This document shows, piece by piece, positions 26,811 through 64,000 of a stretch of 64,000 nt of DNA (the stretch's first letter is position 1; every line of letters begins with the position of its first letter). The position numbers were made by a program, and so were the translations under genes. Source of the DNA: Octopus sinensis. Lineage: Eukaryota. The stretch covers positions 140,433-204,432 of the forward strand of contig NW_021835962.1 in NCBI RefSeq assembly GCF_006345805.1, written 5' to 3'. Below the pieces are notes generated by a model. The model was given only the letters and a program-made list of their open reading frames with translations. It ran no database searches and was not told the origin of the DNA.

Positions 26811-27906
26811 TAGTTAACCAAATTTCTGCGTCTTTAAAAATCAAACTATACAATATGTTTGTACGTTTTTTAATATCTCTTCAAAATTTTCCCAGACCAC
26901 AGAATGTTCGATTCTGTTCTAATATTACTAATCGTTTCTTTTCCATATTTATTAATTTGTGACAGCTTTATTTAAGTCTTTAGAAAAAGAATTTCGCGTT
27001 TTCCTTAACATAAGTTGCAAATTTTGCAAACTACCCTGTGCAAATAATTACTTTATTTAACAGACGTCGGAAAGTAAGTTGCTATGTTTTTCAAAGATTA
27101 TATTTAGATTCTTTATTATCGATTAGACCGAGAAATTAAATAAAAGCCTCAATAAACTTTATTGTCTTTTCAGCATTGTTTTTTACTACATTTTCAATTT
27201 TCACAACACTTGTTTAGGGTAGACTTTAACCAGACTTTTGAACATTCCAATTGAAATCGATAAAATGAAAGTTCCATCTAAAATTCGGTCACCTCTAAAT
27301 TGCATTTTTATCCCAAATTGACGTTGTTCCATTTTTCCAAATATGGACGTTACGGTTGATTATATATAAATAGTCGGAATGTTTTTACTCTGAAGTGTCA
27401 AAAGTTTTCGTGTTTTTATTTAATCTTTAACTTAAATTTTTAGGTGAATTTTTCTAGTTCGTACAGTAATCAAGTTATTTTTTGGTTTATTTTCTTTATT
27501 TTTTAGCTTAAAAAATCGGCCTAGTTATTATAATTGATTTGAAATTTGAAAAATGAACTTCCATGCAAATTGAATTTTTTGGTGTTAAAAAAGAGGCTTT
27601 TCCTTTTTATGCCCCAAGCGACCCTCAGTGGTTGCATTTACATCCTCCATATTTGTTTCATAACCTATTTGTCTTTACTTGTAGCATTTTACAGTTGCAT
27701 GAAAGCAGGGTTTATAGACTGCTATCTATATGGCCATATGGCCATTGATAGTTTACTTTAAATTATAAGTAACTAGCTCAGCAGTTCGCTTCGCTCACTG
27801 CGAGCTAGCTCCTGCGGAGGCCCTGCTCGCTACGCTCGCAGTTTCCTTAAATAACTATAAATTTATGTAGATATATAAATGCGACCTGCTTTGATATAAC
27901 CTTATT

Positions 27907-28700
27907 CTAAGGCCTGTGGATAAACGATGTTTGCAGTCCGTCCATCCTTGGCAAATATAAATAAATTTCTCTTCTACCTACCCTTGAGCACCCCACATAC
28001 AGCTGGCCATGTGAAAAGCACTCGTTCTCTAAAAATAAGCCTACTACCTTTAAAGACTGTCCCTGGGCCTTGTTTATTGTCATAGCAAAACTTATCTTCA
28101 GCGGAAATTGTAGTCTCTTAAATCTATCGCAGGCCCTTTCATGGTCCATAATAACGTCGACCGATTTATATATTCTTTCTCTGCCAGGGATTTTCATTAA
28201 TAAATCTAAATTTATATTAAGTACCTCATCATTAAGTGGAGCTAATATAGCTCGTTCACGCAGCCAGTCGAAATTCACGTAGTGTTCAGATAGTTCGGAA
28301 TAGACGGCATTCAATAATTCTTCTGCTGTTTCTACGAAAATACATAATTCTTCCGGTAGCCTAATTTTCTGGTCGTGCATTTCTGAAGTGATTGCCCCAT
28401 TTCCAATATCTAGAAGGATTTGTGGGAATATGCTATTAACGCCTTGTAAATGTGCATGTACATTTACATCTAAGCTTACCTTTTTCACGTGTGTCCACAA
28501 ATATGACGATTTGAGGCAGGCATTCAATTCATCCGCAGGCGTCCCTCTTTGAATAATTGGCAGCGTCTGTCTAAAATCACCTGCCAATACAACTAATGCT
28601 CCCCCAAACAAATGGTCGCTACAATTCTTGATATCTCTATATGTTCGGTCAACTGCTTGAATGCGCCTTTATGAGCCATCGTACATTCATCCCAAACAAT
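27907..28700 (-). pseudogene. Helitron-type PIF1 helicase C-terminal half (no Rep domain, no Walker A)
   Basis: 'IVWDECTMAHK', 'FGGALVVLAGDFRQTLP', 'RAILAPLN', 'RLQFPLKISFAMTINKAQGQSL' and 'HGQLYVGCSRV'. Confidence 0.92.
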
Positions 28701-29424
28701 TAACCTAGAATGCATAATTCTATTACCCGTAGTTGAGTCTAACAGCAGTCCTGACCTTGTTCAGCTGTTGTCTAAGTTCCCTCACCATTTAAGCACATCT
28801 TCCCTCGTTTCTCTTTTTTTGTTATATGGTTCATATTCTCTTGTTTGTTAACATTCTCAGATCTCTCTTTATAGGACATTCTTATGATTTTGTAAACGCG
28901 AATCAGTAATTTATATTAAATTTTCTACGTAAATTTATTTAGTGAAATTTATGTAAAGTGTATTATCCAATCAAAGCCATTATACTTAATTGCCTCTATG
29001 TTTAAAGGAATTGAAACTTTAGCATAATCGAACTTGTCTGTTTCGGTAAAGAAAATGATAATCAGCTTCATCTTTGTAGTATTATAAGGAAAAAAAATTA
29101 AAGCCTGTTAAATCAAGGAGATTTAAATATAGGCAAATTGAAATTTACATGACTAATTTAAATTTTATTTGCCTCTATCTTTTAAGAAATCTAAACAGTA
29201 GCATAATCGAATTTGTCAGTTTCGGCAGTTAAAAAGAATCAATTATGTAAATCTCTAATAATTTTTGCTTTTTCCTTTTTAGTGGTTTTCAAAATCTGAT
29301 AATTGCACAGTCTATTCATGGTCGATAACAATTAGAGCTTTTATTTTATTTTTTAACGAAAATTTAACAAAAAAGAATTTATGTCATCGAAAAAAGATAG
29401 CTAAGCTAATTAATGGCCTCACGA

Positions 29425-32400
29425 GGCTTGAAGGTTGTGGAGGACCTCATCATGTGAGTCGAGGACTTTCTTGTCGTTCATTTTAACAAAAACGCAGAAA
29501 ATATTTTTTTTAATTTTTGGGCTTGAAGGTTTTGGGGGACCACATCATGTGAGTCGAGGACTTTCTTGTTGTTCATTTAACAAAAACGCAGAAAATAATT
29601 TTTTTTAAATTTTTTGGCTTGAAGGTTTTGAGGGACCACATCATGTGAGTCGAGGACTTTCTTGTTGTTCATTTTAACAAAAACGCAGAAAATAATTTTT
29701 TTAATTTTTTGGCTTGAAGGTTTTGAGGGACCACATCATGTGAGTCGAGGACTTTCTTGTTGTTCATTTTAACAAAAACGCAGAAAATAATTTTTTTTAA
29801 TTTTTTGGCTTGAAGGTTTTGGGGGACCACATCATGTGAGTCGAGGACTTTCTTGTTGTTTATTTTAACAAAAACGCAGAAAATAATTTTTTTAATTTTT
29901 TGGCTTGAAAGTTTTGGAGGACCACATCATGTGAGTCGAGGACTTTCTTGTTGTTCATTTTAACAAAAACGCAGAAAATAATTTTTTTAATTTTTTACTT
30001 GAAGGTTTTGGGGGACCACATCATGTGAGTCGAGGACTTTCTTGTTGTTCATTTTAACAAAAACGCAGAAAATAATTTTTTTAATTTTTTACCTTGAAGG
30101 TTTTGGGGGACCACATCATGTGAGTCGAGGACTTTCTTGCTGTTCATTTTAACAAAAACGCAGAAAATAATTTTTTTAATTTTTTAGCTTGAAGGTTTTG
30201 GGGGACCACATCATGTGAGTCGAGGACTTTCTTGTTGTTCATTTTAACAAAAACGCAGAAAATAATTTTTTTTAATTTTTGGCTTGAAGGTTTTGGGGGA
30301 CCACATCATGTGAGTCGAGGACTTTCTTGTTCGTCATTTAAACAAAAACGCAGAAATAATTTTTTTAATTTTTTAGCTTGAAGGTTTTGGGGGACCACAT
30401 CATGTGAGTCGAGGACTTTCTTGTTGTTCATTTTAACAAAAACGCAGAAAATAATTTTTTTTAATTTTTTGGCTTGAAGGTTTTGGGGGACCACATCATG
30501 TGAGTCGAGGACTTTCTTGTTGTTCATTTTAACAAAAACGCAGAAAATAATTTTTTTTAATTTTTTGGCTTGAAGGTTTTGGGGGACCACATCATGTGAG
30601 TCGAGGACTTTCTTGTTGTTCATTTTAACAAAAACGCAGAAAATATTTTTTTTAATTTTTTGGCTTGAAGGTTTTGGGGGACCACATCATGTGAGTCGAG
30701 GACTTTCTTGTTGTTCATTTTAACAAAAACGCAGAAAATAATTTTTTTTAATTTTTTGGCTTGAAGGTTTTGGGGGACCACATCATGTGAGTCGAGGACT
30801 TTCTTGTTGTTCATTTTAACAAAAACGCAGAAAATAATTTTTTTTAATTTTTTGGCTTGAAGGTTTTGGGGGACCACATCATGTGAGTCGAGGACTTTCT
30901 TGTTGTTCATTTTAACAAAAACGCAGAAAATAATTTTTTTTAATTTTTGGCTTGAAGGTTTTGGGGGACCACATCATGTGAGTCGAGGACTTTCTTGTTG
31001 TTCATTTTAACAAAAACGCAGAAAATAATTTTTTTAATTTTTTAGCTTGAAGGTTTTGGGGGACCACATCATGTGAGTCGAGGACTTTCTTGTTGTTCAT
31101 TTTAACAAAAACGCAGAAAATAATTTTTTTAATTTTTTGGCTTGAAGGTTTTGGGGGACCACATCATGTGAGTCGAGGACTTTCTTGTTGTTCATTTTAA
31201 CAAAAACGCAGAAAATAATTTTTTTAATTTTTTAGCTTGAAGGTTTTGGGGGACCACATCATGTGAGTCGAGGACTTTCTTGTTGTTCATTTTAACAAAA
31301 ACGCAGAAAATAATTTTTTTTAATTTTTGGGCTTGAAGGTTTTGGGGGACCACATCATGTGAGTCGAGGACTTTCTTGTTGTTCATTTAACAAAAACGCA
31401 GAAAATAATTTTTTTAATTTTTTGGCTTGAAGGTTTTGGGGGACCACATCATGTGAGTCGAGGACTTTCTTGTTGTTCATTTTAACAAAAACGCAGAAAA
31501 TAATTTTTTTTAATTTTTTGGCTTGAAGGTTTTGGGGACCACATCATGTGAGTCGAGGACTTTCTTGTTGTTCATTTTAACAAAAACGCAGAAAATAATT
31601 TTTTTTAATTTTTTGGCTTGAAGGTTTTGGGGGACCACATCATGTGAGTCGAGGACTTTCTTGTTGTTCATTTTAACAAAAACGCAGAAAATAATTTTTT
31701 TAATTTTTTGGCTTGAAGTTTTGGGGGACCACATCATGTGAGTCGAGGACTTTCTTGTTGTTCATTTTAACAAAAACGCAGAAAATAATTTTTTTAATTT
31801 TTTACCTTGAAGGTTTTGGGGGACCACATCATGTGAGTCGAGGACTTTCTTGTTGTTCATTTTAACAAAAACGCAGAAAATAATTTTTTTAATTTTTTAC
31901 CTTGAAGGTTTTGGGGGACCACATCATGTGAGTCGAGGACTTTCTTGCTGTTCATTTTAACAAAAACGCAGAAAATAATTTTTTTAATTTTTTAGCTTGA
32001 AGGTTTTGGGGGACCACATCATGTGAGTCGAGGACTTTCTTGTTGTTCATTTTAAAAAAACGCAGAAAATAATTTTTTTTAATTTTTTGGCTTGAAGGTT
32101 TTGGGGGACCACATCATGTGAGTCGAGGACTTTCTTGTTCGTCATTTAAACAAAAACGCAGAAAATAATTTTTTTAATTTTTTAGCTTGAAGGTTTTGGG
32201 GGACCACATCATGTGAGTCGAGGACTTTCTTGTTGTTCATTTTAACAAAAACGCAGAAAATAATTTTTTTTAATTTTTTGGCTTGAAGGTTTTGGGGGAC
32301 CACATCATGTGAGTCGAGGACTTTCTTGTTGTTCATTTTAACAAAAACGCAGAAAATAATTTTTTTTAATTTTTTGGCTTGAAGGTTTTGGGGGACCACA

Positions 32401-35400
32401 TCATGTGAGTCGAGGACTTTCTTGTTGTTCATTTTAACAAAAACGCAGAAAATAATTTTTTTAATTTTTTGGCTTGAAGGTTTTGGGGGACCACATCATG
32501 TGAGTCGAGGACTTTCTTGTTGTTCATTTTAACAAAAACGCAGAAAATAATTTTTTTAATTTTTTAGCTTGAAGGTTTTGGGGGACCACATCATGTGAGT
32601 CGAGGACTTTCTTGTTGTTCATTTTAACAAAAACGCAGAAAATAATTTTTTTTAATTTTTTGGCTTGAAGGTTTTGGGGGACCACATCATGTGAGTCGAG
32701 GACTTTCTTGTTGTTCATTTTAACAAAAACGCAGAAAATAATTTTTTTTAATTTTTTGGCTTGAAGGTTTTGGGGGACCACATCATGTGAGTCGAGGACT
32801 TTCTTGTTGTTCATTTTAACAAAAACGCAGAAAATAATTTTTTTAATTTTTTGGCTTGAAGGTTTTGGGGGACCACATCATGTGAGTCGAGGACTTTCTT
32901 GTTGTTCATTTTAACAAAAACGCAGAAAATAATTTTTTTTAATTTTTTGGCTTGAAGGTTTTGGGGGACCACATCATGTGAGTCGAGGACTTTCTTGTTG
33001 TTCATTTTAACAAAAACGCAGAAAATTTTTTTTAATTTTTGGGCTTGAAGGTTTTGGGGGACCACATCATGTGAGTCGAGGACTTTCTTGTTGTTCATTT
33101 AACAAAAACGCAGAAAAAATTTTTTTTAATTTTTTGGCTTGAAGGTTTTGGGGGACCACATCATGTGAGTCGAGGACTTTCTTGTTGTTCATTTTAACAA
33201 AAACGCAGAAAATAATTTTTTTTAATTTTTTGGCTTGAAGGTTTTGGGGGACCACATCATGTGAGTCGAGGACTTTCTTGTTGTTCATTTTAACAAAAAC
33301 GCAGAAAATAATTTTTTTTAATTTTTTGGCTTGAAGGTTTTGGGGGACCACATCATGTGAGTCGAGGACTTTCTTGTTGTTCATTTTAACAAAAACGCAG
33401 AAAATAATTTTTTTAATTTTTTGGCTTGAAGGTTTTGGGGGACCACATCATGTGAGTCGAGGACTTTCTTGTTGTTCATTTTAACAAAAACGCAGAAAAT
33501 AATTTTTTTAATTTTTTAGCTTGAAGGTTTTGGGGGACCACATCATGTGAGTCGAGGACTTTCTTGTTGTTCATTTTAACAAAAACGCAGAAAATAATTT
33601 TTTTAATTTTTTAGCTTGAAGGTTTTGGGGGACCACATCATGTGAGTCGAGGACTTTCTTGTTGTTCATTTTAACAAAAACGCAGAAAATAATTTTTTTA
33701 ATTTTTTGGCTTGAAGGTTTTGGGGGACCACATCATGTGAGTCGAGGACTTTCTTGTTGTTCATTTTAACAAAAACGCAGAAAATAATTTTTTTTAATTT
33801 TTTGGCTTGAAGGTTTTGGGGGACCACATCATGTGAGTCGAGGACTTTCTTGTTGTTCATTTTAACAAAAACGCAGAAAATAATTTTTTTAATTTTTTAG
33901 CTTGAAGGTTTTGGGGGACCACATCATGTGAGTCGAGGACTTTCTTGTTGTTCATTTTAACAAAAACGCAGAAAATAATTTTTTTAATTTTTTGGCTTGA
34001 AGGTTTTGGGGGACCACATCATGTGAGTCGAGGACTTTCTTGTTGTTCATTTTAACAAAACGCAGAAAATAATTTTTTTTAATTTTTTGGCTTGAAGGTT
34101 TTGGGGGACCACATCATGTGAGTCGAGGACTTTCTTGTTGTTCATTTTAACAAAAACGCAGAAAATAATTTTTTTTAATTTTTGGCTTGAAGGTTTTGGG
34201 GGACCACATCATGTGAGTCGAGGACTTTCTTGTTGTTCATTTTAACAAAAACGCAGAAAATAATTTTTTTTAATTTTTTGGCTTGAAGGTTTTGGGGGAC
34301 CACATCATGTGAGTCGAGGACTTTCTTGTTGTTCATTTTAACAAAAACGCAGAAAATAATTTTTTTTAATTTTTTGGCTTGAAGGTTTTGGGGGACCACA
34401 TCATGTGAGTCGAGGACTTTCTTGTTGTTCATTTTAACAAAAACGCAGAAAATAATTTTTTTTAATTTTTTGGCTTGAAGGTTTTGGGGGACCACATCAT
34501 GTGAGTCGAGGACTTTCTTGTTGTTCATTTTAACAAAAACGCAGAAAATAATTTTTTTAATTTTTTAGCTTGAAGGTTTTGGGGGACCACATCATGTGAG
34601 TCGAGGACTTTCTTGTTGTTCATTTTAACAAAAACGCAGAAAATAATTTTTTTTAATTTTTTGGCTTGAAGGTTTTGGGGGACCACATCATGTGAGTCGA
34701 GGACTTTCTTGTTGTTCATTTTAACAAAAACGCAGAAAATAATTTTTTTAATTTTTTAGGCTTGAAGGTTTTGGGGGACCACATCATGTGAGTCGAGGAC
34801 TTTCTTGTTGTTCATTTTAACAAAAACGCAGAAAATAATTTTTTTAATTTTTTGGCTTGAAGGTTTTTGGGGACCACATCATGTGAGTCGAGGACTTTCT
34901 TGTTGTTCATTTAACAAAAACGCAGAAAATAATTTTTTTTAATTTTTTGGCTTGAAGGTTTTGGGGGACCACATCATGTGAGTCGAGGACTTTCTTGTTG
35001 TTCATTTTAACAAAAACGCAGAAAATAATTTTTTTAATTTTTTGGCTTGAAGGTTTTGGGGGACCACATCATGTGAGTCGAGGACTTTCTTGTTGTTCAT
35101 TTTAACAAAAACGCAGAAAATAATTTTTTTTAATTTTTTGGCTTGAAGGTTTTGGGGGACCACATCATGTGAGTCGAGGACTTTCTTGTTGTTCATTTTA
35201 ACAAAAACGCAGAAAATAATTTTTTTAATTTTTTGGCTTGAAGGTTTTGGGGGACCACATCATGTGAGTCGAGGACTTTCTTGTTGTTCATTTTAACAAA
35301 AACGCAGAAAATAATTTTTTTTAATTTTTTGGCTTGAAGGTTTTGGGGGACCACATCATGTGAGTCGAGGACTTTCTTGTTGTTCATTTTAACAAAAACG

Positions 35401-38400
35401 CAGAAAATAATTTTTTTAATTTTTTGGCTTGAAGGTTTTGGGGGACCACATCATGTGAGTCGAGGACTTTCTTGTTGTTCATTTTAACAAAAACGCAGAA
35501 AATAATTTTTTTAATTTTTTGCTTGAAGGTTTTGGGGGACCACATCATGTGAGTCGAGGACTTTCTTGTTGTTCATTTTAACAAAAACGCAGAAAATAAT
35601 TTTTTTTAATTTTTTGGCTTGAAGGTTTTGGGGGACCACATCATGTGAGTCGAGGACTTTCTTGTTGTTCATTTTAACAAAAACGCAGAAAATAATTTTT
35701 TTAATTTTTTGCTTGAAGGTTTTGGGGGACCACATCATGTGAGTCGAGGACTTTCTTGTTGTTCATTTTAACAAAAACGCAGAAAATAATTTTTTTAATT
35801 TTTTGGCTTGAAGGTTTTGGGGGACCACATCATGTGAGTCGAGGACTTTCTTGTTGTTCATTTTAACAAAAACGCAGAAAATAATTTTTTTAATTTTTTG
35901 GCTTGAAGGTTTTGGGGGACCACATCATGTGAGTCGAGGACTTTCTTGTTGTTCATTTTAACAAAAACGCAGAAAATAATTTTTTTTAATTTTTTGGCTT
36001 GAAGGTTTTGGGGGACCACATCATGTGAGTCGAGGACTTTCTTGTTGTTCATTTTAACAAAAACGCAGAAAATAATTTTTTTAATTTTTTGGCTTGAAGG
36101 TTTTGGGGGACCACATCATGTGAGTCGAGGACTTTCTTGTTGTTCATTTTAACAAAAACGCAGAAAATAATTTTTTTTAATTTTTTGGCTTGAAGGTTTT
36201 GGGGACCACATCATGTGAGTCGAGGACTTTCTTGTTGTTCATTTTAACAAAAACGCAGAAAATAATTTTTTTTAATTTTTTGGCTTGAAGGTTTTGGGGA
36301 CCACATCATGTGAGTCGAGGACTTTCTTGTTGTTCATTTTAACAAAAACGCAGAAAATAATTTTTTTAATTTTTTGGCTTGAAGGTTTTGGGGGACCACA
36401 TCATGTGAGTCGAGGACTTTCTTGTTGTTCATTTTAACAAAAACGCAGAAAATAATTTTTTTAATTTTTTGGCTTGAAGGTTTTGGGGGACCACATCATG
36501 TGAGTCGAGGACTTTCTTGTTGTTCATTTTAACAAAAACGCAGAAAATATTTTTTTTAATTTTTTGCTTGAAGGTTTTGGGGGACCACATCATGTGAGTC
36601 GAGGACTTTCTTGTTGTTCATTTTAACAAAAACGCAGAAAATAATTTTTTTTAATTTTTTGGCTTGAAGGTTTTGGGGGACCACATCATGTGAGTCGAGG
36701 ACTTTCTTGTTGTTCATTTTAACAAAAACGCAGAAAATAATTTTTTTTAATTTTTTGGCTTGAAGGTTTTGGGGGACCACATCATGTGAGTCGAGGACTT
36801 TCTTGTTGTTCATTTTAACAAAAACGCAGAAAATAATTTTTTTTAATTTTTTGGCTTGAAGGTTTTGGGGGACCACATCATGTGAGTCGAGGACTTTCTT
36901 GTTGTTCATTTTAACAAAAACGCAGAAAATAATTTTTTTAATTTTTTGGCTTGAAGGTTTTGGGGGACCACATCATGTGAGTCGAGGACTTTCTTGTTGT
37001 TCATTTTAACAAAAACGCAGAAAATAATTTTTTTAATTTTTTGGCTTGAAGGTTTTGGGGGACCACATCATGTGAGTCGAGGACTTTCTTGTTGTTCATT
37101 TTAACAAAAACGCAGAAAATAATTTTTTTAATTTTTTGGCTTGAAGGTTTTGGGGGACCACATCATGTGAGTCGAGGACTTTCTTGTTGTTCATTTTAAC
37201 AAAAACGCAGAAAATAATTTTTTTAATTTTTTGCTTGAAGGTTTTGGGGGACCACATCATGTGAGTCGAGGACTTTCTTGTTGTTCATTTTAACAAAAAC
37301 GCAGAAAATAATTTTTTTTAATTTTTTGGCTTGAAGGTTTTGGGGACCACATCATGTGAGTCGAGGACTTTCTTGTTGTTCATTTTAACAAAAACGCAGA
37401 AAATAATTTTTTTTAATTTTTTGGCTTGAAGGTTTTGGGGGACCACATCATGTGAGTCGAGGACTTTCTTGTTGTTCATTTTAACAAAAACGCAGAAAAT
37501 AATTTTTTTAATTTTTTGGCTTGAAGGTTTTGGGGGACCACATCATGTGAGTCGAGGACTTTCTTGTTGTTCATTTTAACAAAAACGCAGAAAATAATTT
37601 TTTTTAATTTTTTAGCTTGAAGGTTTTGGGGGACCACATCATGTGAGTCGAGGACTTTCTTGTTGTTCATTTTAACAAAAACGCAGAAAATAATTTTTTT
37701 TAATTTTTTAGCTTGAAGGTTTTGGGGGACCACATCATGTGAGTCGAGGACTTTCTTGTTGTTCATTTTAACAAAAACGCAGAAAATAATTTTTTTTAAT
37801 TTTTTGGCTTGAAGGTTTTGGGGGACCACATCATGTGAGTCGAGGACTTTCTTGTTGTTCATTTTAACAAAAACGCAGAAAATAATTTTTTTAATTTTTT
37901 GGCTTGAAGGTTTTGGGGGACCACATCATGTGAGTCGAGGACTTTCTTGTTGTTCATTTTAACAAAAACGCAGAAAATAATTTTTTTAATTTTTTGGCTT
38001 GAAGGTTTTGGGGGACCACATCATGTGAGTCGAGGACTTTCTTGTTGTTCATTTTAACAAAAACGCAGAAAATAATTTTTTTAATTTTTTGGCTTGAAGG
38101 TTTTGGGGGACCACATCATGTGAGTCGAGGACTTTCTTGTTGTTCATTTTAACAAAAACGCAGAAAATAATTTTTTTTAATTTTTTGGCTTGAAGGTTTT
38201 GGGGGACCACATCATGTGAGTCGAGGACTTTCTTGTTGTTCATTTTAACAAAAACGCAGAAAATAATTTTTTTAATTTTTTGCTTGAAGGTTTTGGGGGA
38301 CCACATCATGTGAGTCGAGGACTTTCTTGTTGTTCATTTTAACAAAAACGCAGAAAATAATTTTTTTAATTTTTTGGCTTGAAGGTTTTGGGGGACCACA

Positions 38401-41400: not shown

Positions 41401-42363
41401 ATTTTTTAATTTTTTGGCTTGAAGGTTTTGGGGACCACATCATGTGAGTCGAGGACTTTCTTGTTGTTCATTTTAACAAAAACGCAGAAAATATTTTTTA
41501 ATTTTTAGCTTGAAGGTTTTGGGGGACCACATCATGTGAGTCGAGGACTTTCTTGTTGTTCATTTTAACAAAAACGCAGAAAATAATTTTTTTTAATTTT
41601 TTTAGCTTGAAGGTTTTGGGGGACCACATCATGTGAGTCGAGGACTTTCTTGTTGTTCATTTTAACAAAAACGCAGAAAATAATTTTTTTTAATTTTTTA
41701 CCTTGAAGGTTTTGGGGGACCACATCATGTGAGTCGAGGACTTTCTTGTTGTTCATTTTAACAAAAACGCAGAAAATAATTTTTTAATTTTTTAGCTTGA
41801 AGGTTTTGGGGGACCACATCATGTGAGTCGAGGACTTTCGTTGTTTATTTTAACAACAAAACGCAGAAAATAATTTTTTTTAATTTTTTTAGCTTGAAGG
41901 TTTGGGGGACCACATCATGTGAGTCGAGGACTTTCTTGTTGTTCATTTTAAAAAAACGCAGAAAATAATTTTTTTAATTTTTTAGCTTGAAGGTTTTGGG
42001 GGGACCACATCATGTGAGTCGAGGACTTTCTTGTTGTTCATTAACAAAAACGCAGAAAATAATTTTTTTAATTTTTTGGCTTGAAGGTTTTGGGGGACCA
42101 CATCATGTGAGTCGAGGACTTTCTTGTTGTTTCATTTTAACAAAACGCAGAAAAAATTTTTTTAATTTTTTAGCTTGAAGGTTTTGGGGGACCACATCAT
42201 GTGAGTCGAGGACTTTCTTGTTGTTTATTTTACAAAACGCAGAAAATAATTTTTTTAATTTTTTAGCTTGAAGGTTTTGGGGGACCACATCATGTGAGTC
42301 GAGGACTTTCTTGTTGTTCATTTTAACAAAAACGCAGAAAAATAATTTTTTTAATTTTTTAGC
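29425..42363. repeat. 95/96-bp satellite, array A (~135 monomers)
   Basis: Monomer GCTTGAAGGTTTTGGGGGACCACATCATGTGAGTCGAGGACTTTCTTGTTGTTCATTTTAACAAAAACGCAGAAAATAA(T7-8)AA(T6)G repeated head-to-tail; highly homogeneous. Confidence 0.99.
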
Positions 42364-53900: not shown

Positions 53901-54961
53901 ATTTTACAAAAACGCAGAAAATAATTTTTTTAATTTTTGGCTTGAAGGTTTTGGGGACCACATCATGTGAGTCGAGGACTTTCTTGTTGTTCATTTAACA
54001 AAAACGCAGAAAATAATTTTTTTTTAATTTTTTGGCTTGAAGGTTTGGGGGACCACATCATGTGAGTCGAGGACTTTCTTGTTGTTTATTTTAACAAAAA
54101 CGCAGAAAATAATTTTTTAATTTTTAGCTTGAAGGTTTTGGGGACCACATCATGTGAGTCGAGGACTTTCTTGTTGTTCATTTTAACAAAAACGCAGAAA
54201 TAATTTTTTTAATTTTTTGGCTTGAAGGTTTTGGGGGACCACATCATGTGAGTCGAGGACTTCTTGTTGTTCATTTGAACAGAAACGCAGAAGAATAATT
54301 TTTTTAATTTTTTACCTTGAAGGTTTTGAGGGACACAACACTCATGTGAGTCGGACGGACTTTCTTGTGGTTCATTTTAACAAAAACGCAGAATAATTTT
54401 TTTTTAAATTTTTTTGGCTTGAAGGTGTTGGGGGGACCACATCATGTGAGTCGAGGACTTTCTTGTTGTTCTTTTAACAAAAACGCAGAAAATAATTTTT
54501 TTAATTTTTTGGTTGAAGGTTTGGGGGACCACATCATGTGAGTCGAGGACTTGTCGTGTTGTTCATTTTAACAAAAACGCAGAAAATATAATTTTTTTAA
54601 TTTTTTGGCTTGAAGGTTTTGGGGACCACATCATGTGTGAGTCGAGACTTGTCTTGTTGTTCATTTTAACAAAAACGCAGAAAATAATTTTTTTAATTTT
54701 TTAACCTTGAGTTTTTGGGGACCACATCATGTTGGAGGTCGAAAATCCGGACTAGTCTTGATGGTGTATGGGTTTACATAAGACGCAGAAAATATTTTTT
54801 GTTTTATATTTTGGGCTTGAAGGTTTTGGGGGACCACATTTGAAAAGGGGAGGGCAACATCAGATCCGAAGGACTTTCTTGATGTTCAATTTAACAAACC
54901 GCAGAAAATAATTTTTTGTAAGGGAATTATCAGTTGAAGGGTTGGGGGACACAACAATCAT
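44998..54961. repeat. 95/96-bp satellite, array B (~104 monomers); quality degrades toward the right end
   Basis: Same monomer; indel noise increases from ~49 kb. Confidence 0.98.
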
Positions 54962-55004
54962 TTAATGAATTTAATTATAGCTGAGGTGCGTTTCGTTTCT
55001 GGTT

Positions 55005-56153
55005 GTGCAAATAGCAAAATTGAAAACAAAATTAATGTTAATTTCAAACAAGAAAAAAAATCGGAAAGTGTCGATAATTGTACGTGTGTCAAACACCTCT
55101 TTTGATTCAATTGAGGTTGCCAACATCATCTGTAATTCGAAAACTGCCCTCAAGGCGAGAATCTCCCGTCGCTTTGATGGCTCATACGAACTTGTCTTTA
55201 ATTCGGACGGGATTTCGAGTCTTTTAAAAACGATTGGAAATGAAGCTTCCTTTTGGTGACAATGGGCACACAATAGAGCACCGAACACCGGGATTCGACC
55301 TTAATGATGAGGAATCTACCTTTTTGGGTGATAACGAGGATCTACACAGCTTTTGTCGAAAGTGCTATCCCCAGGGTTCAAACTGGAAAGATTTAGTAAA
55401 ATGGGAAAAATCTGCCACTTGGCAAGCTTACTATCCAGGACAGAAACGAAGCACAGTCGTTGATCACCCTAGGTCTTAAAATTGGCTTCAACCAAATCCG
55501 TTTTACTACCTGGTACAAAAATCCCGAGGCAATGCTATCGATGTTACAATTTGGACACATCTCGTTATACTGTAAAGAGACAGTGCGCTGTTTTGTTGTG
55601 TGGTGATGCACACGATCGCACCCAATGTACGATCGGAACACACGTCAAACTCCCGTGCATCAACTGCGGATCACATGGACACCGGGCGAACTGGTTGGGC
55701 TGTCCGGTGGCGAAACAATCGACAAAGAAGAAACTGGAAGTGACTCCCACTAAGAGAAATCGTGTAAATGCAATACAAATGTCTGGCATACAAATGTCTT
55801 GGTCGAAGAAGTTACTTAATCCGAAATGCGATATTGGTGTTCAAACTGACGTTATCGTCATGAACTTGATCGAATCAGGAAGTCAGACCTGCTTCATTAA
55901 CACGGGAATTCAAACGGACCCATGCCCAGAAACAAAACCCGCCGCCCCGAAGGCGAGAGCAGTGAAGAAAACTGCAGTAGCAAAATCTGGAGTTCAGCTG
56001 CCAAGCCCTGAAGCCCGGCTGGAGGACGATGGGACGCCTCCAGAGCCGGCTGAAACCGGTGGCAAACGGAAAGCAGGCAGACCCCCTTTACCGAAAAAGG
56101 TGGCGCTCCCACGGGAGGTCAGCCACCCATGTCGGAAGGATTCCTTGCTCTGA
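55005..56153 (+). CDS. LINE ORF1, gag-like with three CCHC zinc knuckles (frameshifted in this assembly)
   Basis: Reconstructed across 1-bp shifts: CYRCYNFGHISLYC, C.LCGDAHDRTQC and CINCGSHGHRANWLGC, followed by a basic/Pro-rich tail. Confidence 0.8.
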
Positions 56154-58723
56154 CAATTCTAAATGCCCGCTCGCTTGCGAGACGGGCATCGGAGCTGAGG
56201 CTCCTGCTGGCCACAGCGAAGTCTCACATATTGATTATCAATGAGACTAAGCTGAAGGAAGCTACGAGGGTGGAATTCGAAGGCTATAAGTCTATTAATA
56301 TACCATGGAAAATAAACTCAGTGGCGGGGACAGGAACCTCAGTCTACTACAGGGCGAACCTTAAGGTAAGAAACATCAGAATTGTGGAGGAGTCACTCTG
56401 TGAACTTATTGTGCTCGAGCTGCACACGACTGCTGGCTGGCTAACCGTCGGGGGAATGTACTCAAAGTCGCTAAGGCGCTATTCAAACGTTATTGGGACG
56501 TTCTTTGAGGAAAATTGCCTGTCAATCCTAGCAGGAGATCTTAATAATGCCAAAATGTGAGTTATGGATGTGAAACTACGAATATGGATGGAACTGTCCT
56601 TGAGGACTTGGCCAGTAGCTTGGGTTTTTCGGTCTTTACATCGGAAGAACTGAATCATTATGCAGACAGAGGCAGGGCTGATCGCTTGGGTCTCTTTCTA
56701 TGCTCGGCATCAATTAGTCCTTTATGTTACATACCGAGGTTGGAAGCGGACATTGGCTCTGACCACGTGCCGCAAACGATGTTGATAAAGATGACTATGA
56801 ATGTTACGGAGGACTTGTTCATTGGTTACAACCTCGTGAACATGAACTGGAGTTTATTCGAATCATATATGCGGGATTCTCTTCGAAATGTCGTGTCCCA
56901 GCCTCTGAGAAGCAGAGATGATATTGACAATCTCGATGATCACCTTAGATCGTCAATCATAAAATTCCTGGATGTTTATGCATTAAAAAATGTATGGAAC
57001 CCAAAGGAACGCAAAAGCGGATGAATTCGAAACTTGTCACTCTGATCAGAACGAAAGGTACCCTGGAAAATCGCAGGAGAAGATGTCGGGTTGAGTCAAT
57101 CAAATGCCGCCTGAAATTGGAGATCGACAAGATAAAATCTACTATTGCAAAAATGGCCAAGACTGAGGTCGAAAGTAAATGGAGGTCTGAATGCAGAAAA
57201 CTGGATAAGCGAAACCCTAATTTCTGGAAAGCATATCAACGCCTTACCAGAAATGATGCCAAAGGATTTGAAATTTCACTAAAAGAACCAGACGGGAAAT
57301 ATATCTCCTCTGATCGTATCCCGGAAGTACTCAGGAACCAACTGAGTCAGGTTCAAGAGGTCGAATCTACCGTTCCACGAGGGACTTATGACCGAATTGT
57401 GAAGAAGCTTGGCTCTTCGCAATTATCGGAGGGACCATTATGTGGGGCGATAACACAGGAAGAGGTTGAAAGGGCAATTGCTGGGTTGAAGAACAAGGCG
57501 CCTGGCTTCGACTACATCCCTCCGAAGTTGTTAAAGAAGGCCCCTGAAATCTTGATACGAGCATTGACTATGTTGTTTCACGCCAGCTGGACGTTCGGAC
57601 ACCTTCCATCGGCGTGGAAGCATACGATTGTTCGAATGATTCCAAAATCTGGTAAATCGACACTGCTGGCACAGAACTACCGGCCAATTAGCCTCATTTG
57701 TGCTTTCTCTAAGACAATGGAAAAGATTGTCTTTAACAGACTCTCTGGTCATATAGAATCACAAAATTTGCTTTTACCTGAACAATGGGGATTTCGTGGA
57801 GGAAGATCCACAGGGACTGCCTCAGGGAGTTAGAGCACCAATTATCCCGTGCTGACAGAAATGAAGCATGGCTAACTGTGGTGTCTGGATCTGGCCAAAG
57901 CCTTCGATAGCGTGTGGCACCTGGGCCTACTCTCCAGAATCCATGACATCGGAGCCGGGATAAAGACCTATCGATGGCTGGAGAGCTTCTTGTCAGGAAG
58001 ACAATCATTTGTCCGCTGTGGAAACCGCCTATCGGGGTGTGTGGAACTTAGAAGGGGAGTCCCGCAGGGATCTATCTTGAGTCCACTTCTGTTCAACCTC
58101 TTCTTGGCGGACATTCCTCTGCCGTCGACACGTACTGGCAAGCTCGTTATCTATGCTGACGATATCCTGGTCATGGATACCTCGAAAGGATATCGCAGTC
58201 TTGGAGACGACTGAAATCATACATTGCAACGCTAAAGATGTGGACTATAGAGAAGGGTTTGACCCTAGCACCGGAGAAGAGCACCATTTCATGGTTGCGG
58301 AGAGGGAGTCGCTATGCGGAGTCTTGTGCATATGCGATGAGTAGCTATGTGATGGATCTCTCGAAAAGAAAAAATCTTTCTTACCTGGGAGCAACCATTA
58401 ACTGTCGTGGCTCGTACGTAGAGCATATAGCAAATCAGAGAAAGAGGAGTGTGAGGATCCTCAAAAGCTTAACCAGGTTCCATCTGGATCCGGAAACGTA
58501 CATCTACGTATACAAAACGTGTGTGCAGCCAGTCCTCACATATGGCTACGAGGGCTGGTACGGTACGGAGGAGAGTGACTACCTGATCGAACAGTTGGAA
58601 AAGACAAGACGTTTCGCTATGAAATTGGCTTACGGAGTACAACTTGACGGAAGGCTAAAAGACTCACAAGAATCCTCTGTGCCCACGATCCGGATGGTCT
58701 TGGAGAATTGTCGTCAAACATGA
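56129..58723 (+). CDS. LINE ORF2: APE endonuclease + reverse transcriptase, no RNase H seen (frameshifted in this assembly)
   Basis: 'ILNARSL..INETKL..LAGDLN..GSDHVP' (APE), then RT motifs. Frameshifts fall at different positions than in copy 1. Confidence 0.88.
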
Positions 58724-58841
58724 CTAGTATTGGGGATACGCATGGAAAGAGACACTTCGGTGCCTTGTTTTTATCTCCCCGCGATGTTTTTCTTCCTTGT
58801 TTTTCTTTTCTTTTCGCTCAATAAACACTATTCTATTCTAT

Positions 58842-60437
58842 CATATCATGTGAGTCGAGGACTTTTCTTGTTTGTTTCTTTTACAAAAACGCAGAAATAA
58901 TTTTTTTAATTTTTTAGCTTGAGGTTTTGGGGGACCACTCATTGAGTCGAGGACTTTCTTGTGTGTTCATTTTAACAAAAAACGCAGAAAATACTTTTTT
59001 TAATTTTTTAGCTTACTGTTTTGGGGGACCACATCATGTGAGTCGAGGACTTTCTTGTTGTTCACTAATTTACAGCAAAACCGCAGAAAATAATTTTTTT
59101 AATTTTTTAGCTTGAAGGTTTGGGGACCACATCATGTGAGTCGAGGACTTTTCTTGTTGTTCATTTAACAAACGCAGATATTTTTTCATTTTTTACCTTG
59201 AAGGTTTTGGGGACCACATCAGTGAGTCGAGGACTTTCTTGTTGTTCATTTTTAACAAAAAACGCAGAAAATAATTTTTTGTTTAATTTTGGCTTGAAGG
59301 TTTTGGGGGGACCCATCATGTGAGTCGAGGACTTTCTTGTTGTTTATTTTAACAAAAACGCAGAAATATTTTTTTCAATTTTTTTGGCTTGAAGGTTTTG
59401 GGGACCACATCATGTGATCGAGGGGACTTTCTTGATGTTCATTTAACAAAACGCAGAAAATTTTTTTTTTAATTTTTGGGCTTGAAGGTTTTGGGGGACC
59501 ACATCATGTGAGTCGAGGACTTTCTTGTTGTGTTATTTTAACAAAAACGCAGAAAATATTTTTTTAATTTTTGGCTTGAAGGTTTTGGGGGAACCACATC
59601 ATGTGGAGTCGAGACTTTCTTGTTGTTCATTTTAACAAAAACGCAGAAAATAATTTTTTTTAATTTTTTGGCTTGAAGTTTTTGGGGGACCACATCATGT
59701 GAGTCGAGGACTTTCTGTTGTTATTTTTAACACACACCACAGAAAATAATTTTTTTTAATTTTTTAGCTTGAAGGTTTTGGGGGACCACATCAGTGAGTC
59801 GAGGACTTTCTTGTTGTCATTTTACAAAAACGAGAAAATAATTTTTTTAATTTTTGGCTTGAAGGTTTTGGGACCACATCATGTGAGTCGAGGACTGTCT
59901 TGTTGTTTCATGTTTAACAAAAACGCAGAAAAATATTTTTTTTAATTTGGGCTTGAAGGTTTTGGGGACCACAATCAAATGTGAGTCGAGGACTTTCTTG
60001 TTGTTCATTTAACAAAACCGCCAGAAAATAATTTTGTTTAAATTTTTTGGCTGGAATTTTTGAGAGGACCACATCATGTGAGTCGAGGACTTTCTTTTTG
60101 TTCATTTTAAAACAAAAACGCAGAAAATAATTTTTTTTAATTTTTTAGCTTGAAGGTTTTGGGGGACCACATCATGTGAGTCGAGGATTTCTTGTTGTTC
60201 ATTTAACAAAAACGCAGAAAATAATTTTTTTTAATTTTGTTGGCTTGAAGGTTTTTGAGGACCACATCATGTGAGTCAGGAACTTTCTTGTTGTTCATTT
60301 TATTACAAAACGCAGAAAATAATTTTTTAATTTTTTACTTGAAGGTTTTGGGGGACCACATCATGTGATTCCGAGAACTTTCTTGTTGTTCATTTAAACA
60401 AAAATCGCAGAAAATTGACTTGAAGGTTTTGGGGACC
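58842..60437. repeat. 95/96-bp satellite, array C (~17 noisy monomers)
   Basis: Same monomer with many indels. Confidence 0.95.
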
Positions 60438-60648
60438 TTTCATCGAGGATATTCTTTCTTATTAAAATTTTTGACAGGAATGTTCTTAGATATACAATCA
60501 AACCTTTTAGTGTTCCTCATTATATAATAACCCAAAGGGAAGGTTTTTGGACAATTGATCTGTTTTGATAACAATTTGAATGTGGGTGTGCACATAAGAC
60601 AGAACACAACAGACGACAGCATACCACCATAAATTTTCATTATTAAGA
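60438..60648 (-). other. Unique ~210-bp segment, candidate Helitron 5' end
   Basis: The minus strand starts TCTTAATAATGAAAAT followed by a GT/CT-rich low-complexity run, and grades into a degenerate satellite monomer at ~60480-60438. Confidence 0.55.
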
Positions 60649-60779
60649 CTAGCTCAGCAGTTCGCTTCGCTCACTGCGAGCTAGCTCCTGCGGAGGCCCT
60701 GCTCGCTACGCTCGCAGTTTCCTTAAATAACTATAATTTATGTAGATATATAAATGCGACCTGCTTTGATATAACCTTA

Positions 60780-61570
60780 TTCTAAGGCCTGTGGATAAAC
60801 GATGTTTGCAGTCCGTCCATCCTTGGCAAATATAAATAAATTTCTCTTCTACCTACCCTGAGCACCCCACATACAGCTGGCCATGTGAAAAGCACTCGTT
60901 CTCTAAAATAAGCCTACTACCTTTAAAGACTGTCCCTGGGCCTTGTTTATTGTCATAGCAAAACTTATCTTCAGCGGAAATTGTAGTCTCTTAAATCTAT
61001 CGCAGGCCCTTTCATGGTCCATAATAACGTCGACCGATTTTATATATTCTTCTCTGCCAGGGATTTTCATTAATAAATCTAAATTTATATTAAGTACCTC
61101 ATCATTAAGTGGAGCTAATATAGCTCGTTCACGCAGCCAGTCGAAATTCACGTAGTGTTCAGATAGTTCGGAATAGACGGCATTCAATAATTCTTCTGCT
61201 GTTTCTACGAAAATACATAATTCTTCCGGTAGCCTAATTTTCTGGTCGTGCATTTCTGAATGATTGCCCCATTTCCAATATCTAGAAGGATTTGTGGGAA
61301 TATGCTATTAACGCCTTGTAAATGTGCATGTACATTTACATCTAAGCTTACCTTTTTCACGTGTGTCCACAAATATGACGATTTGAGGCAGGCATTCAAT
61401 TCATCCGCAGGCGTCCCTCTTTGAATAATTGGCAGCGTCTGTCTAAAATCACCTGCCAATACAACTAATGCTCCCCCAAACAAATGGTCGCTACAATTCT
61501 TGATATCTCTATATGTTCGGTCAACTGCTTGAATGCGCCTTTATGAGCCATCGTACATTCATCCCAAACA
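60780..61570 (-). pseudogene. Second copy of the PIF1 helicase remnant
   Basis: Same motifs as 27907-28700, split by indels. Confidence 0.9.
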
Positions 61571-62294
61571 ATTAACCTAGAATGCATAATTCTATTACCC
61601 GTAGTTGAGTCTAACAGCAGTCCTGACCTTGTTCAGCTGTTGTCTAAGTTCCCTCACCATTTAAGCACATCTTCCCTCGTTTCTCTTTTTTTGTTATATG
61701 GTTCATATTCTCTTGTTTGTTAACATTCTCAGATCTCTCTTTATAGGACATTCTTATGATTTTGTAAACGCGAATCAGTAATTTATATTAAATTTTCTAC
61801 GTAAATTTATTTAGTGAAATTTATGTAAAGTGTATTATCCAATCAAAGCCATTATACTTAATTGCCTCTATGTTTAAAGGAATTGAAACTTTAGCATAAT
61901 CGAACTTGTCTGTTTTCGGTAAAGAAAATGATAATCAGCTTCATCTTTGTAGTATTATAAGGAAAAAAATTAAAGCCTGTTAAATCAAGGAGATTTAAAT
62001 ATAGGCAAATTGAAATTTACATGACTAATTTAAATTTTTTGCCTCTATCTTTTAAGAAATCTAAACAGTAGCATAATCGAATTTGTCAGTTTCGGCAGTT
62101 AAAAAGAATCAATTATGTAAATCTCTAATAATTTTTGCTTTTTCCTTTTTAGTGGTTTTCAAAATCTGATAATTGCACAGTCTATTCATGTCGATAACAA
62201 TTAGAGCTTTTATTTTATTTTTTAAAACGAAAATTTAACAAAAAGAATTTATGTCATCGAAAAAAGATAGCTAAGCTAATTAATGGCCTCACGA

Positions 62295-64000
62295 GGCTTG
62301 AAGGTTGTGGAGGACCTCATCATGTGAGTCGAGGACTTTCTTGTCGTTCATTTTAACAAAACGCAGAAAATATTTTTTTTTAATTTTTGGGCTTGAAGGT
62401 TTTGGGGGACCACATCATGTGAGTCGAGGACTTTCTTGTTGTTTCATTTAACAAAAACGCAGAAATAATTTTTTTAAATTTTTTGGCTTGAAGGTTTTGA
62501 GGGACCACATCATGTGAGTCGAGGACTTTCTTGTTGTTCATTTTAACAAAAACGAAAAATAATTTTTTTTAATTTTTTGGCTTGAAGGTTTTGAGGGACC
62601 ACATCATGTGAGTCGAGGACTTTCTTGTTGTTCATTTTAACAAAACGCAGAAAATAATTTTTTTTAATTTTTTGGCTTGAAGGTTTTGGGGGACCACATC
62701 ATGTGAGTCGAGGACTTTCTTGTTGTTTTTTTAACAAAAACGCAGAAAAATAATTTTTTTTAATTTTTTGGCTGAAAGTTTTGGGGACCACATCATGTGA
62801 GTCGAGGACTTTCTTGTTGTTCATTTTAACAAAAACGCAGAAAATAAATTTTTTTAATTTTTACCTTGAAGGTTTTGGGGGACCACATCATGTGAGTCGA
62901 GGACTTTCTTGTGTTCATTTTAACAAAAACGCAGAAAATAATTTTTTTAATTTTTTAGCTTGAAGGTTTTGGGGGACCACATCATGTGAGTCGAGGACTT
63001 TCTTGTTGTTCATTTTAACAAAAACGCAGAAAATAATTTTTTTTAATTTTTTTGGCTTGAAGGTTTTGGGGGGACCACACACATCATGTGAGTCGAGGAC
63101 TTTCTTTTGTTCATTTTAACAAAAACGCAGAAAATAATTTTTTTTATTTTTTTGGCTTGAAGGTTTTGGGGGACCACATCATGTGAGTCGAGGACTTTCT
63201 TGTTGTTCATTTTAACAAAAACGCAGAAAATAATTTTTTTAATTTTTAGCTTGAAGGTTTTGGGGGACCACATCATGTGAGTCGAGGACTTTCTTGTTGT
63301 TCATTTTAACAAAAACGCAGAAATAATTTTTTTAATTTTTTGGCTTGAAGGTTTTGGGGGACCACATCATGTGGAGTCGAGGACTTTCTTGTGTTCATTT
63401 AACAAAAACGCAGAAAATAATTTTTTTTAATTTTTTGGGCTTGAAGGTTTTGGGGACCACATCATGTGAGTCGAGGACTTTTTTTGTTGTTCATTTTACA
63501 AAAACGCAGAAAATAATTTTTTTTAATTTTTTGCTGAGAAGGTTTTTGGGGGACCACCATCATTGAGTCGAGGACTTTCTTGTTGTTCATTTTAACAAAA
63601 CGCAGAAAATAATTTTTTTTAATTTTTTTTTGGCTTGAAGTTTTGGGGGACCACATCATGTGAGTCGAGGCTTTTCTTGTTGTTCATTTAAACAAAACGC
63701 AGAAAATAATTTTTTTTAATTTTTGGCTTGAAGTTTTTGGGGGACCACATCATGTGAGTCGAGGACTTTCTTGTTGTTTCATTTTAAACAAACGCAGAAA
63801 GAATTTTTTGTTAATTTTTTTGGGCTGGAAGGTTGTTTGGGGGACCACATCATGTGAGTCGAGGACTTTCTTGTTGTTCATTTTAAACAAACGCAGAAAA
63901 TAATTTTTTTTATTTTTTGCTTGAAGGTTTTGGGGGACCACATCATGTGAGTCGAGGACTTTCTTGTGGTTCATTTTAACAAAAACGCAGAAAAAGCATT
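62295..64000. repeat. 95/96-bp satellite, array D (~18 monomers, truncated by the window)
   Basis: Starts with the same ordered variant monomers as array A. Confidence 0.97.

Follow-up and report, generated by a model that had tools for sequence, protein, structure and literature searches.

The window, a 64,000-nt stretch of an Octopus sinensis contig (NW_021835962.1), carries in its right-hand part a dispersed repeat interrupted by a Helitron 3′ end, followed by a 95-bp satellite array with two LINE insertions and by a second copy of the same Helitron end with its own satellite start. From left to right, the features are:

27400–27772, plus strand: target site, the left part of the interrupted dispersed repeat (92.8% identity to 9353–9729), ending ...TAAATTATAAGTAA, then the Helitron 3′ end
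27773–27845, minus strand: Helitron 3′ terminus of copy 1, a GC-rich hairpin region with a CTAG end, then the flanking T (GC 0.63 vs 0.29–0.34 nearby)
27905–28735, minus strand: C-terminal remnant of a Helitron-type PIF1 helicase, ~280 aa, 2B domain deleted (Pfam PF05970, E = 7.9e-16)
28736–29424, minus strand: AT-rich non-coding spacer of copy 1, from the helicase remnant to the satellite
29425–42360, no strand: satellite block 1 of copy 1, 136 monomers of 95 bp, 97% matches, private variants in the first six
42363–44988, plus strand: 5′-truncated LINE, 2,626 bp, a secondary insertion outside the Helitron proper (Pfam RVT_1, E = 1.4e-35)
45004–54732, no strand: 95-bp satellite block 2 of copy 1, ~102 monomers, indel noise climbing toward the right end
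54733–54965, no strand: ~2.4 diverged satellite-like monomers (~80%), in phase with the array and directly 5′ of the full-length LINE
54966–58841, plus strand: full-length copy of the same LINE, ~3.9 kb, endonuclease trace and RT, also inserted secondarily, at another monomer phase
58845–60415, no strand: last satellite block (3) of copy 1, 16.6 monomers of 95 bp with 84% matches and 9% indels
60416–60648, minus strand: 233-bp unique segment, putative Helitron 5′ end of copy 1, starting TCTTAATAATGAAAAT directly after the CTAG of copy 2
60649–62294, minus strand: copy 2, with 3′ terminus, helicase remnant and spacer as in copy 1 (0 substitutions and 14 one-base indels vs 27773–29424)
62295–64000, no strand: satellite start of copy 2, with the same start base and first six private monomers as copy 1, running off the window

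The initial annotation had considered a microsporidia-like genome; this was overturned by an intact retroelement in the window, which is 100% identical in protein to an O. sinensis entry. A ciliate host was ruled out by long ORFs that are intact under the standard code. Another O. sinensis locus (L006) was rejected as the locus of the window, being merely another copy of the PHD+RT retroelement. Rfam and tRNA scans of the window found nothing, and exact look-ups of its 978-aa and 543-aa ORFs yielded no record.

Within the window, BLAST pairs 27762–29424 with 60639–62294 at 98.98% identity. Global alignment of 27773–29424 with 60649–62294 bore out the near-identity claimed initially: there were no substitutions, and the 14 single-base indel columns fall mostly in homopolymers; the 11 extra bases of the BLAST match are a gapped pairing between two AT-rich stretches. 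Identity breaks off at exactly A|CTAG in each copy, beside GC hairpins, as had been noted before. The terminal 73 nt have a GC content of 63%, above that of the remaining segment (34%) and the flank (29%), and fold into GC stems at −17.9 kcal/mol, with a z-score of only −1.9. These hairpins consist of perfect 9-bp arms (ACTGCGAGC/GCTCGCAGT) and a second, imperfect stem that stops 3 nt short of the end. A CTRR terminus and a GC-rich hairpin just upstream of it characterize Helitron1, and both are present here, the former as CTAG on the minus strand of each copy. The 36-nt terminus occurs at only two places in the window: the ends of copies 1 and 2. The spacer at 28736–29424 holds a two-copy repeat (28986–29058 and 29165–29237, 179 bp apart).

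Alignment with three uninterrupted paralogues placed the break in the dispersed repeat after AAGTAA. The paralogous empty site at 9729 reads aagtaa|taaagc, and the other two intact paralogues (9015–9165 and 25836–25990) read AAGTAA|TCAA, in agreement with the A|T target proposed from the first site. In the interrupted copy the sequence is AAGTAA|CTAG..., corresponding to A|T when read on the strand of the element, the 3′ side of the site alone being visible. Judged by the three paralogues, insertion took place between A and T and produced no target-site duplication, as for Helitron1. The sequence establishes both the Helitron 3′ end and the A|T site into which it inserted, and these features support the assignment of the 1.65-kb segment as the 3′ end of a canonical (Helitron1-type) Helitron in minus-strand orientation. 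Nowhere in 27773–64000 does the right half of the target repeat occur, and the insertion therefore measures at least 36.2 kb. Past its far end the target would resume with T(A/C)AA...TGAC.GTT.TAGTCTGCTACAA.

The nearest kin of the helicase remnant are Helitron-type PIF1 proteins (45–50% identity), and Helitron_like_N genes adjoin those relatives whose loci were looked up. A tblastn search with the helicase of a relative covered only residues 24–201 and 287–359. With a relative as query, no Rep domain was found in the window, so the element is regarded as non-autonomous; RepHel is represented solely by a deletion derivative, the C-terminal helicase remnant. None of the closest helicase relatives (45–50%) has termini in common with this element. 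A helicase remnant of Octopus bimaculoides (P0045, L007) was rejected as a counterpart: it belongs to an older, different element and has no 95-bp satellite nearby. Helentrons have asymmetric terminal inverted repeats, T/T insertion and endonuclease-encoding partners. Here, a comparison of the first 30 nt with the last 300 nt gave only AT-rich 9–10-mers with a mismatch, and the target is A|T and not T/T; the absent terminal inverted repeats and the A|T target rule out a Helentron assignment.

Copy 1 contains ~255 satellite monomers of 95 bp with 92–97% matches (84% in the last short block), a total of 24,236 bp in three blocks, and copy 2 contributes ~18 monomers up to the window end. Being long, head-to-tail and built of one homogeneous non-coding monomer, the array qualifies as satellite DNA. 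Given initially as ~25 kb, it is not uninterrupted: it is broken by the two LINE insertions and ~230 bp of diverged monomers. The start base of the satellite is identical in both copies. Three private variants (TTGTGGAGGACCTCATC, CTTGTCGTTC and GAAAGTTTTGG) are confined to 294xx–299xx and 623xx–627xx, a fourth (TTTTGAGGGACC) occurs exactly twice per copy, and monomers 1–6 match in both copies, as expected from the earlier reading that identity runs into the satellite with shared private variants. The satellite physically belongs to the duplicated unit, its junction and first monomers having been copied along with the 3′ end; the proof of co-duplication rests on six monomers only, the array of copy 2 being visible to 64000. 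Past monomer 8 or so, the monomers stay close to the consensus and give no indication of order; monomer-by-monomer colinearity of the copies could be followed only up to that point. Array monomers show 1–2 substitutions each relative to the consensus, whereas matching monomers of the two copies, like the 1.65-kb parts, show none between them; the variation in the array therefore predates the duplication. In a degenerate-monomer test, the flanks of the array resembled the monomer only ~2 SD above shuffles, and capture of an existing satellite would explain the origin of the array equally well as expansion of a central repeat. Pattern scans of metagenome contigs and prokaryotic genome contigs gave no match to the satellite core and 3′ terminus, and these contigs yielded neither a further copy of the element, its ends or the satellite nor an autonomous partner; a literature search did not find the monomer sequence.

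The two LINE insertions, which the first reading had overlooked, are near-identical and together make up ~6.5 kb of the array. The truncated one carries an intact 543-aa RT ORF (43136–44767); aligned with 56214–58841 over 2,638 columns, it shows 1 substitution and 22 indel columns. The reading frames of the full-length copy are broken by 1-bp indels. Relatives of the LINE ORF reach only 32% identity. Also overlooked was the climb of consensus noise from 48 to 64 kb, with indels per monomer rising from ~0.7 to 5–7 between 46 and 64 kb. Consensus quality drops across 48–64 kb, which leaves the number of monomers in the array, and indeed the connection between its two ends, dependent on assembly across 24 kb of nearly identical repeats.

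Read along the minus strand, TCTTAATAATGAAAATTTATGGTGG..., the sequence named in the initial annotation, comes immediately after the CTAG at 60649, and the two copies abut as CTAG|TC at 60649/60648. The 5′ segment had been given as 210 bp; this figure is approximately right for the part after a degenerate partial monomer (~208 bp), but the non-satellite segment as a whole measures 233 bp (60416–60648). In the window there is no second copy of this segment, no visible empty site for the putative 5′ end and no flank in which an A precedes the TC, and the segment shares no inverted repeat with the 3′ subterminus. The TC dinucleotide is the one feature that suggests 60648 as a true Helitron 5′ end, and only its C is informative because the A|T target rule already demands the T.

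We interpret the locus, with a probability of roughly 0.55, as two abutting copies of a non-autonomous Helitron1-type Helitron whose satellite-bearing unit integrated as a rolling-circle concatemer. Copy 1 would be complete at 32.9 kb (27773–60648, 32,876 bp, matching the ~32.9 kb estimated at the outset) and would later have been struck by the two LINEs, and copy 2 leaves the window. The unit would consist, in order, of 5′-TC, ~230 bp of unique sequence, the 95-bp array, a 690-bp AT-rich spacer, the C-terminal helicase remnant, GC hairpins and CTAG-3′. A RepHel enzyme acting in trans would start at the TC end and peel off a strand that runs across the satellite as far as the hairpin-CTAG terminator. 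If synthesis ran past this terminator on a template that was circular or tandem, more than one unit length could be made or joined, and a head-to-tail dimer or longer concatemer would thereby be integrated. The satellite would be internal cargo, with a copy number that shifts by unequal exchange. We infer that the pair was made as a rolling-circle concatemer, and not by adjacent or nested insertion, and that the entire 24-kb array was mobile cargo. The wider proposition, that a canonical Helitron of an animal replicated an almost all-satellite unit of >25 kb, several lengths of which went into the chromosome as one rolling-circle concatemer, appears doubtful to us.

Copy 2 could instead be an independent insertion at an A|T inside copy 1, in which case the 233-bp segment would be internal and the 5′ end of copy 1 would lie beyond copy 2. 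A T is obligatory after any Helitron, so the C alone favours a terminus, with a chance of ~1 in 4–6 at 33% GC; the segment is AT-rich, like Helitron targets, and the surroundings are full of transposon remains with insertions nested in one another, among them the array LINEs and those that hit the target repeat. However, a 33-kb element offers thousands of alternative A|T sites, and the break lies just 233 bp beyond the array end and exactly at TC, as the head-to-tail arrangement predicts, which makes nesting unlikely. The same CTAG|TC would arise with no multi-round synthesis if a second copy had landed precisely on the A|T where the A of the flank meets the first T of the resident copy's 5′ TC. 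We judge such successive insertions to be distinctly unlikely: one specific A|T among millions is required, unless the enzyme is drawn to its own 5′ end, and zero substitutions between the copies fit a single event at least as well. On the other side, the predicted sequence is identical to the one observed, and double insertions through site preference are on record as one way in which transposon dimers form (McGurk and Barbash, per PMC12628747).

Neither the unit of 32.9 kb nor the tandem in the chromosome would be real if the ends of copy 1 came from different loci joined in the satellite, or if CTAG|TC came from a circular intermediate or a chimeric read. An array of 24 kb with 97%-identical monomers is difficult to assemble, the duplicated parts differ exclusively by 1-bp indels concentrated in the right-hand copies, and the climb in indels per monomer between 46 and 64 kb points the same way. 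Such an assembly artefact is nevertheless very improbable: a base-exact junction at both Helitron termini is unlike random chimeras, the CTAG|TC junction is necessarily in at least one read, and LINEs with their own short flanking repeats at two monomer phases mark the array as real genomic DNA. Hardly credible is a segmental tandem duplication or unequal crossing-over in the satellite that made the second copy with no Helitron activity. Satellite arrays do undergo unequal exchange, and monomer-level order differences between the copies hint at it, but the boundary coincides to the base with the Helitron 3′ terminus, which is independently set by three empty sites, and no flanking homology would put a recombination junction there.

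Both tandem Helitron arrays of rolling-circle origin and satellites borne by Helitrons have been described before (PMC12628747, PMC11934779, PMC12001565, PMC4595182, PMC7492417). The Helitron satellites of Caenorhabditis elegans, described as one set of 345 satellites, short for the most part and divided among six families, have Helitron1-type TC...hairpin-CTAG ends at A|T, which the octopus unit resembles in its hairpin-CTAG end and, putatively, in its TC; both have internal tandem repeats, and the satellites spread with the transposon (PMC4595182). The octopus unit differs in retaining no more than a remnant of the helicase, in its 24-kb array in one copy and in the head-to-tail abutment. 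Helentron/HINE elements likewise have conserved ends around a central satellite-like array that is able to expand into a classical satellite, with DINE-1 and DINE-TR1 as Drosophila cases (PMC4067079; Dias et al. 2015 per PMC12628747) and, in molluscs like the octopus, the oyster Cg170/pearl-type elements with central tandem repeats (PMC7492417, PMC8268682, PMC11136912). In contrast, the octopus element has no terminal inverted repeat, an A|T target, a CTAG end and a PIF1 remnant.

Plant tandem Helitrons (Xiong, Dooner and Du 2016 per PMC12628747; Arabidopsis per PMC11934779) are similar in consisting of units in direct tandem, and are attributed to failure of rolling-circle termination. The plant arrays have mostly truncated units, many 5′ ends and a single 3′ end, whereas the octopus pair keeps a 3′ end per visible unit and shows a 3′-to-putative-5′ junction, a ~33-kb unit and an animal host. 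As in the octopus, minisatellites dominate non-autonomous animal copies of Heli2Xen of Xenopus (PMC12001565) and the Helitron-like subtelomeric repeat of Hydractinia (PMC11934779); their monomers (166 bp; 372 and ~150 bp, respectively), element type and location are different, and the available parts of these two papers report no precise CTAG|TC dimer junction.

The octopus locus is a clean new example of a known route by which transposons carry and spread satellite DNA, and not a new kind of element: such structures are already on record in molluscs, flies, nematodes, frogs and plants, and the current picture of Helitron biology is unchanged by the finding. If reads and other copies confirm the arrangement, it would be a well-resolved canonical animal Helitron with a long satellite cargo, whose preserved base-exact head-to-tail junction bears on rolling-circle tandem copying and on the seeding and relocation of satellites; the link between satellites and Helitrons/Helentrons, known in bivalves, would be extended to cephalopods with their very repetitive, little-studied genomes. 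Should the reading as a multi-unit concatemer be true, CTAG|TC would be a footprint of multi-round rolling-circle transposition, and Helitrons could relocate whole satellite arrays, beyond a few seed monomers, in cephalopods.

Two near-identical Helitron 3' ends lie on the minus strand of the window; they belong to copy 1 (27773-60648) and to copy 2, which starts at 60649 and runs off the window end. In a self-comparison of the window 27762-29424 and 60639-62294 were 99% identical, and global alignment of the 1.65-kb segments proper (27773-29424 and 60649-62294) was free of substitutions; its 14 gap columns are one-base indels, most of them in homopolymer runs. In each copy A|CTAG marks the precise limit of identity, beside the GC hairpins noted in the initial annotation. 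The five observations made there (the near-identity, this limit, the private variants common to the initial ~6 satellite monomers, the sequence directly following the CTAG of copy 2 and the A|T target) were all confirmed far beyond chance; for example, the 36-nt 3' terminus was found twice in a window scan with 0 matches expected.

Parts of the duplicated 1.65-kb segment, all on the minus strand
AT-rich non-coding stretch of 690 bp with a two-copy repeat
Last ~280 residues of a PIF1-type helicase (Pfam PF05970, E = 7.9e-16)
AT-rich sequence of ~60 bp between helicase remnant and terminal region
Terminal region of 73 nt, 63% GC, stem-forming, with CTAG at its end

The proteins nearest to the helicase remnant are PIF1-like, from arthropods and octopuses, with 45-50% identity. 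Two of these relatives were looked up and both are immediately preceded by genes with a Helitron_like_N domain; they therefore belong to genuine RepHel loci. When a RepHel query was used in tblastn, helicase residues 24-201 and 287-359 alone matched in both copies and a Rep domain was detected in neither. With a partial helicase and no Rep, the element is thus a non-autonomous deletion derivative. The two-copy repeat of the AT-rich spacer (28986-29058 and 29165-29237 in copy 1, 79% identical, 179-bp spacing) is present in both Helitron copies and may be another tandem repeat at an incipient stage.

The flank at 27400-27772 is part of a dispersed repeat, whose copies span 9035-9779 and 25836-27772. 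The sequence TAAATT(A/G)TAAGTAA|T(A/C)AA...TGAC.GTT.TAGTCTGCTACAA is intact in three paralogous stretches, whereas at 27683-27772 it is cut off behind AAGTAA and gives way to CTAGCTCAG. On the element strand CTAG is followed by T; the insertion thus lies between A and T (A|T), and no duplication is visible. The target repeat's right half (TGAC.GTT.TAGTCTGCTACAA) occurs at 9111, 9743 and 25932 and, less well matched, at 24194; since it is absent from 27773-64000, the inserted DNA measures at least 36.2 kb and extends out of the window. Members of this repeat family (9035-9779, 25836-27772) carry direct repeats of ~115-150 bp at both ends, each with ATGGCCATATGGCCAT (or ATGGCCACGTGGCCAT); the 25.8-27.8 kb copy has two additional internal insertions compared to the 9-kb copy, and 13190-13448 holds a third copy with more divergence. 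Immediately beyond the two CTAG ends (27762-27772 and 60639-60648) we observed a gapped resemblance on the minus strand, TTACTTATAAT versus TCTTAATAAT. In AT-rich DNA such a match probably arises by chance; alternatively, it might point to a preference for targets similar to the 5' end of the element itself.

The right half of the window consists mostly of a 95-bp tandem repeat. Two copies of a single LINE, not recorded in the initial annotation, split it.

Satellite blocks and LINE insertions
29425-42360: 95-bp tandem repeat
42363-44988: LINE, 5'-truncated, with an intact 543-aa ORF
45004-54732: 95-bp tandem repeat
~54966-58841: LINE, ~3.9 kb
58845-60415: 95-bp tandem repeat
62295-63994: 95-bp tandem repeat

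The satellite of copy 1 totals 24,236 bp (~25 kb in the initial annotation) and is broken by the two LINEs. It starts at the identical base after both 1.65-kb segments, and where it is well resolved each monomer has 1-2 substitutions relative to the consensus. The first six monomers match variant for variant between copies 1 and 2, and the variants listed in the initial annotation are confined to them. As the 1.65-kb segments are free of substitutions too, the internal variation of the array predates the duplication, and at least 570 bp of array were copied along with the Helitron end. Past monomer 8 the monomers are consensus-like, so that the order can be compared between copies in the earlier monomers only; junction-type markers hint that the copies differ by one or two whole monomers. 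Unique sequences flanking the array resemble the monomer at only ~2 SD above shuffles, and the array may have grown from internal sequence or, alternatively, may have been captured. Minus-strand ORFs of 105-128 aa at 30306-37862 within the satellite are not genes, but artefacts of a frame without stops across a few monomers.

At 30-46 kb there are ~0.7 indels per monomer; the number rises steadily over 48-64 kb and reaches 5-7 at 54-64 kb. The duplicated parts differ exclusively by 1-bp indels, mainly in the right-hand copies, and for both duplicated elements such indels alone break the reading frames on the right-hand side. The noise at 48-64 kb probably reflects a poorly polished long-read consensus in a repeat, so array length and long-range linkage have to be treated with caution.

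A single substitution and 22 one-base indels separate the LINE copies, which carry a reverse transcriptase (RT) with a weak endonuclease trace and end in a (TATTC)n-like tail; identity to the best relatives in the database is only 32%. Given their different monomer phases and short flanking repeats (ATTTTT(T)A; ATCAT(GT)), they are two independent recent insertions, and with an intact 543-aa ORF in one copy the family has been active in the very recent past. Immediately 5' of the long LINE, ~2.4 satellite monomers (54733-54965) are diverged to ~80% and in phase with the array; a LINE that sat in an older array of this satellite could have brought them along by 5' transduction, or they could result from scrambling at the LINE insertion.

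On the minus strand the CTAG of copy 2 at 60649 is directly followed by TCTTAATAATGAAAATTTATGG..., which gives a CTAG|TC junction with the putative 5' end of copy 1. This 233-bp segment (60416-60648, 33% GC) grades into the satellite. It looks as a Helitron 5' end abutting the 3' end of the previous unit would, on evidence that is thin: a T is obligatory after any Helitron 3' end, so the C of TC alone is informative, and neither a second copy nor an empty site was found in the window. With this putative end copy 1 would be a complete unit of 32,876 bp (~32.9 kb in the initial annotation). No inverted repeat was found between the putative 5' end and the 3' subterminus. This and the A|T target rule out the Helentron/Helitron2 type and fit a canonical Helitron.

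We favor, with a probability of roughly 0.55, a head-to-tail pair of one non-autonomous Helitron with the satellite as internal cargo. In this reading RepHel, provided in trans, would make its nick at the TC end, its helicase would open the DNA across the array as far as the hairpin-CTAG terminator, and read-through on a circular or tandem template would yield a dimer or longer concatemer that then integrated at the A|T site. The concatemer of the initial annotation is borne out in its 3' end, its target, the joint duplication of satellite and end, and the abutment of the units; its 5' end, origin in a single event and mobility of the full array are presumed. The same abutment might have arisen by nested insertion of copy 2 within copy 1, which we consider unlikely, or, with somewhat lower odds, by a second insertion precisely at the 5' boundary of the copy already in place. 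Less probable again is an error of assembly or the inclusion of a circular intermediate in the contig, the noisy consensus at 48-64 kb notwithstanding. Plain segmental duplication is very improbable; it does not account for a boundary that matches the Helitron terminus to the base.

The left 27 kb look like nested transposon debris, including RT fragments; no host gene was detected there.

Coding remains in the left 27 kb
5342-6577; 15181-15558; 21653-22466: pogo-type DDE_1 transposase in two ORFs, hAT dimerisation and BED-like fragments
10205-13141: intact 978-aa ORF with N-terminal PHD finger, RT domain and Cys/His-rich C-terminal part

The region of the 978-aa ORF has 47% GC against a background of ~30%. 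Over 56% of its length the protein matches Octopus sinensis LOC115229063 with 100% identity, and the genome, initially likened to those of microsporidia, is instead that of an octopus of the O. sinensis/vulgaris group. At the DNA level the element is 99.3% identical to a further copy at a separate locus on O. sinensis VCDQ01001009.1, suggesting that the retroelement family is young; 1097-1636 contains a related fragment from the C-terminal part.

Central tandem repeats of Helitron/Helentron elements that grow into satellites are textbook cases in oysters (PMC7492417, PMC8268682, PMC11136912; review PMC12628747) and, with DINE-1 and DINE-TR1, in Drosophila (PMC4067079; review PMC12628747). In C. 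elegans satellites were spread by canonical Helitrons (PMC4595182). Also described are minisatellite-rich Helitrons in Xenopus (PMC12001565), Hydractinia subtelomeres filled by a Helitron-like repeat with a minisatellite (PMC11934779) and tandem Helitron arrays in plants, attributed to rolling-circle replication (Xiong et al. 2016, via PMC12628747 and PMC11934779). In the literature searched, no paper linked octopus, Helitrons and satellites, and the 95-bp monomer sequence was quoted nowhere. Given these documented satellite-bearing and tandem Helitrons, the octopus pair is a further case of a known kind of structure; it stands out by how large an array a canonical Helitron contains and by its exact CTAG|TC junction.
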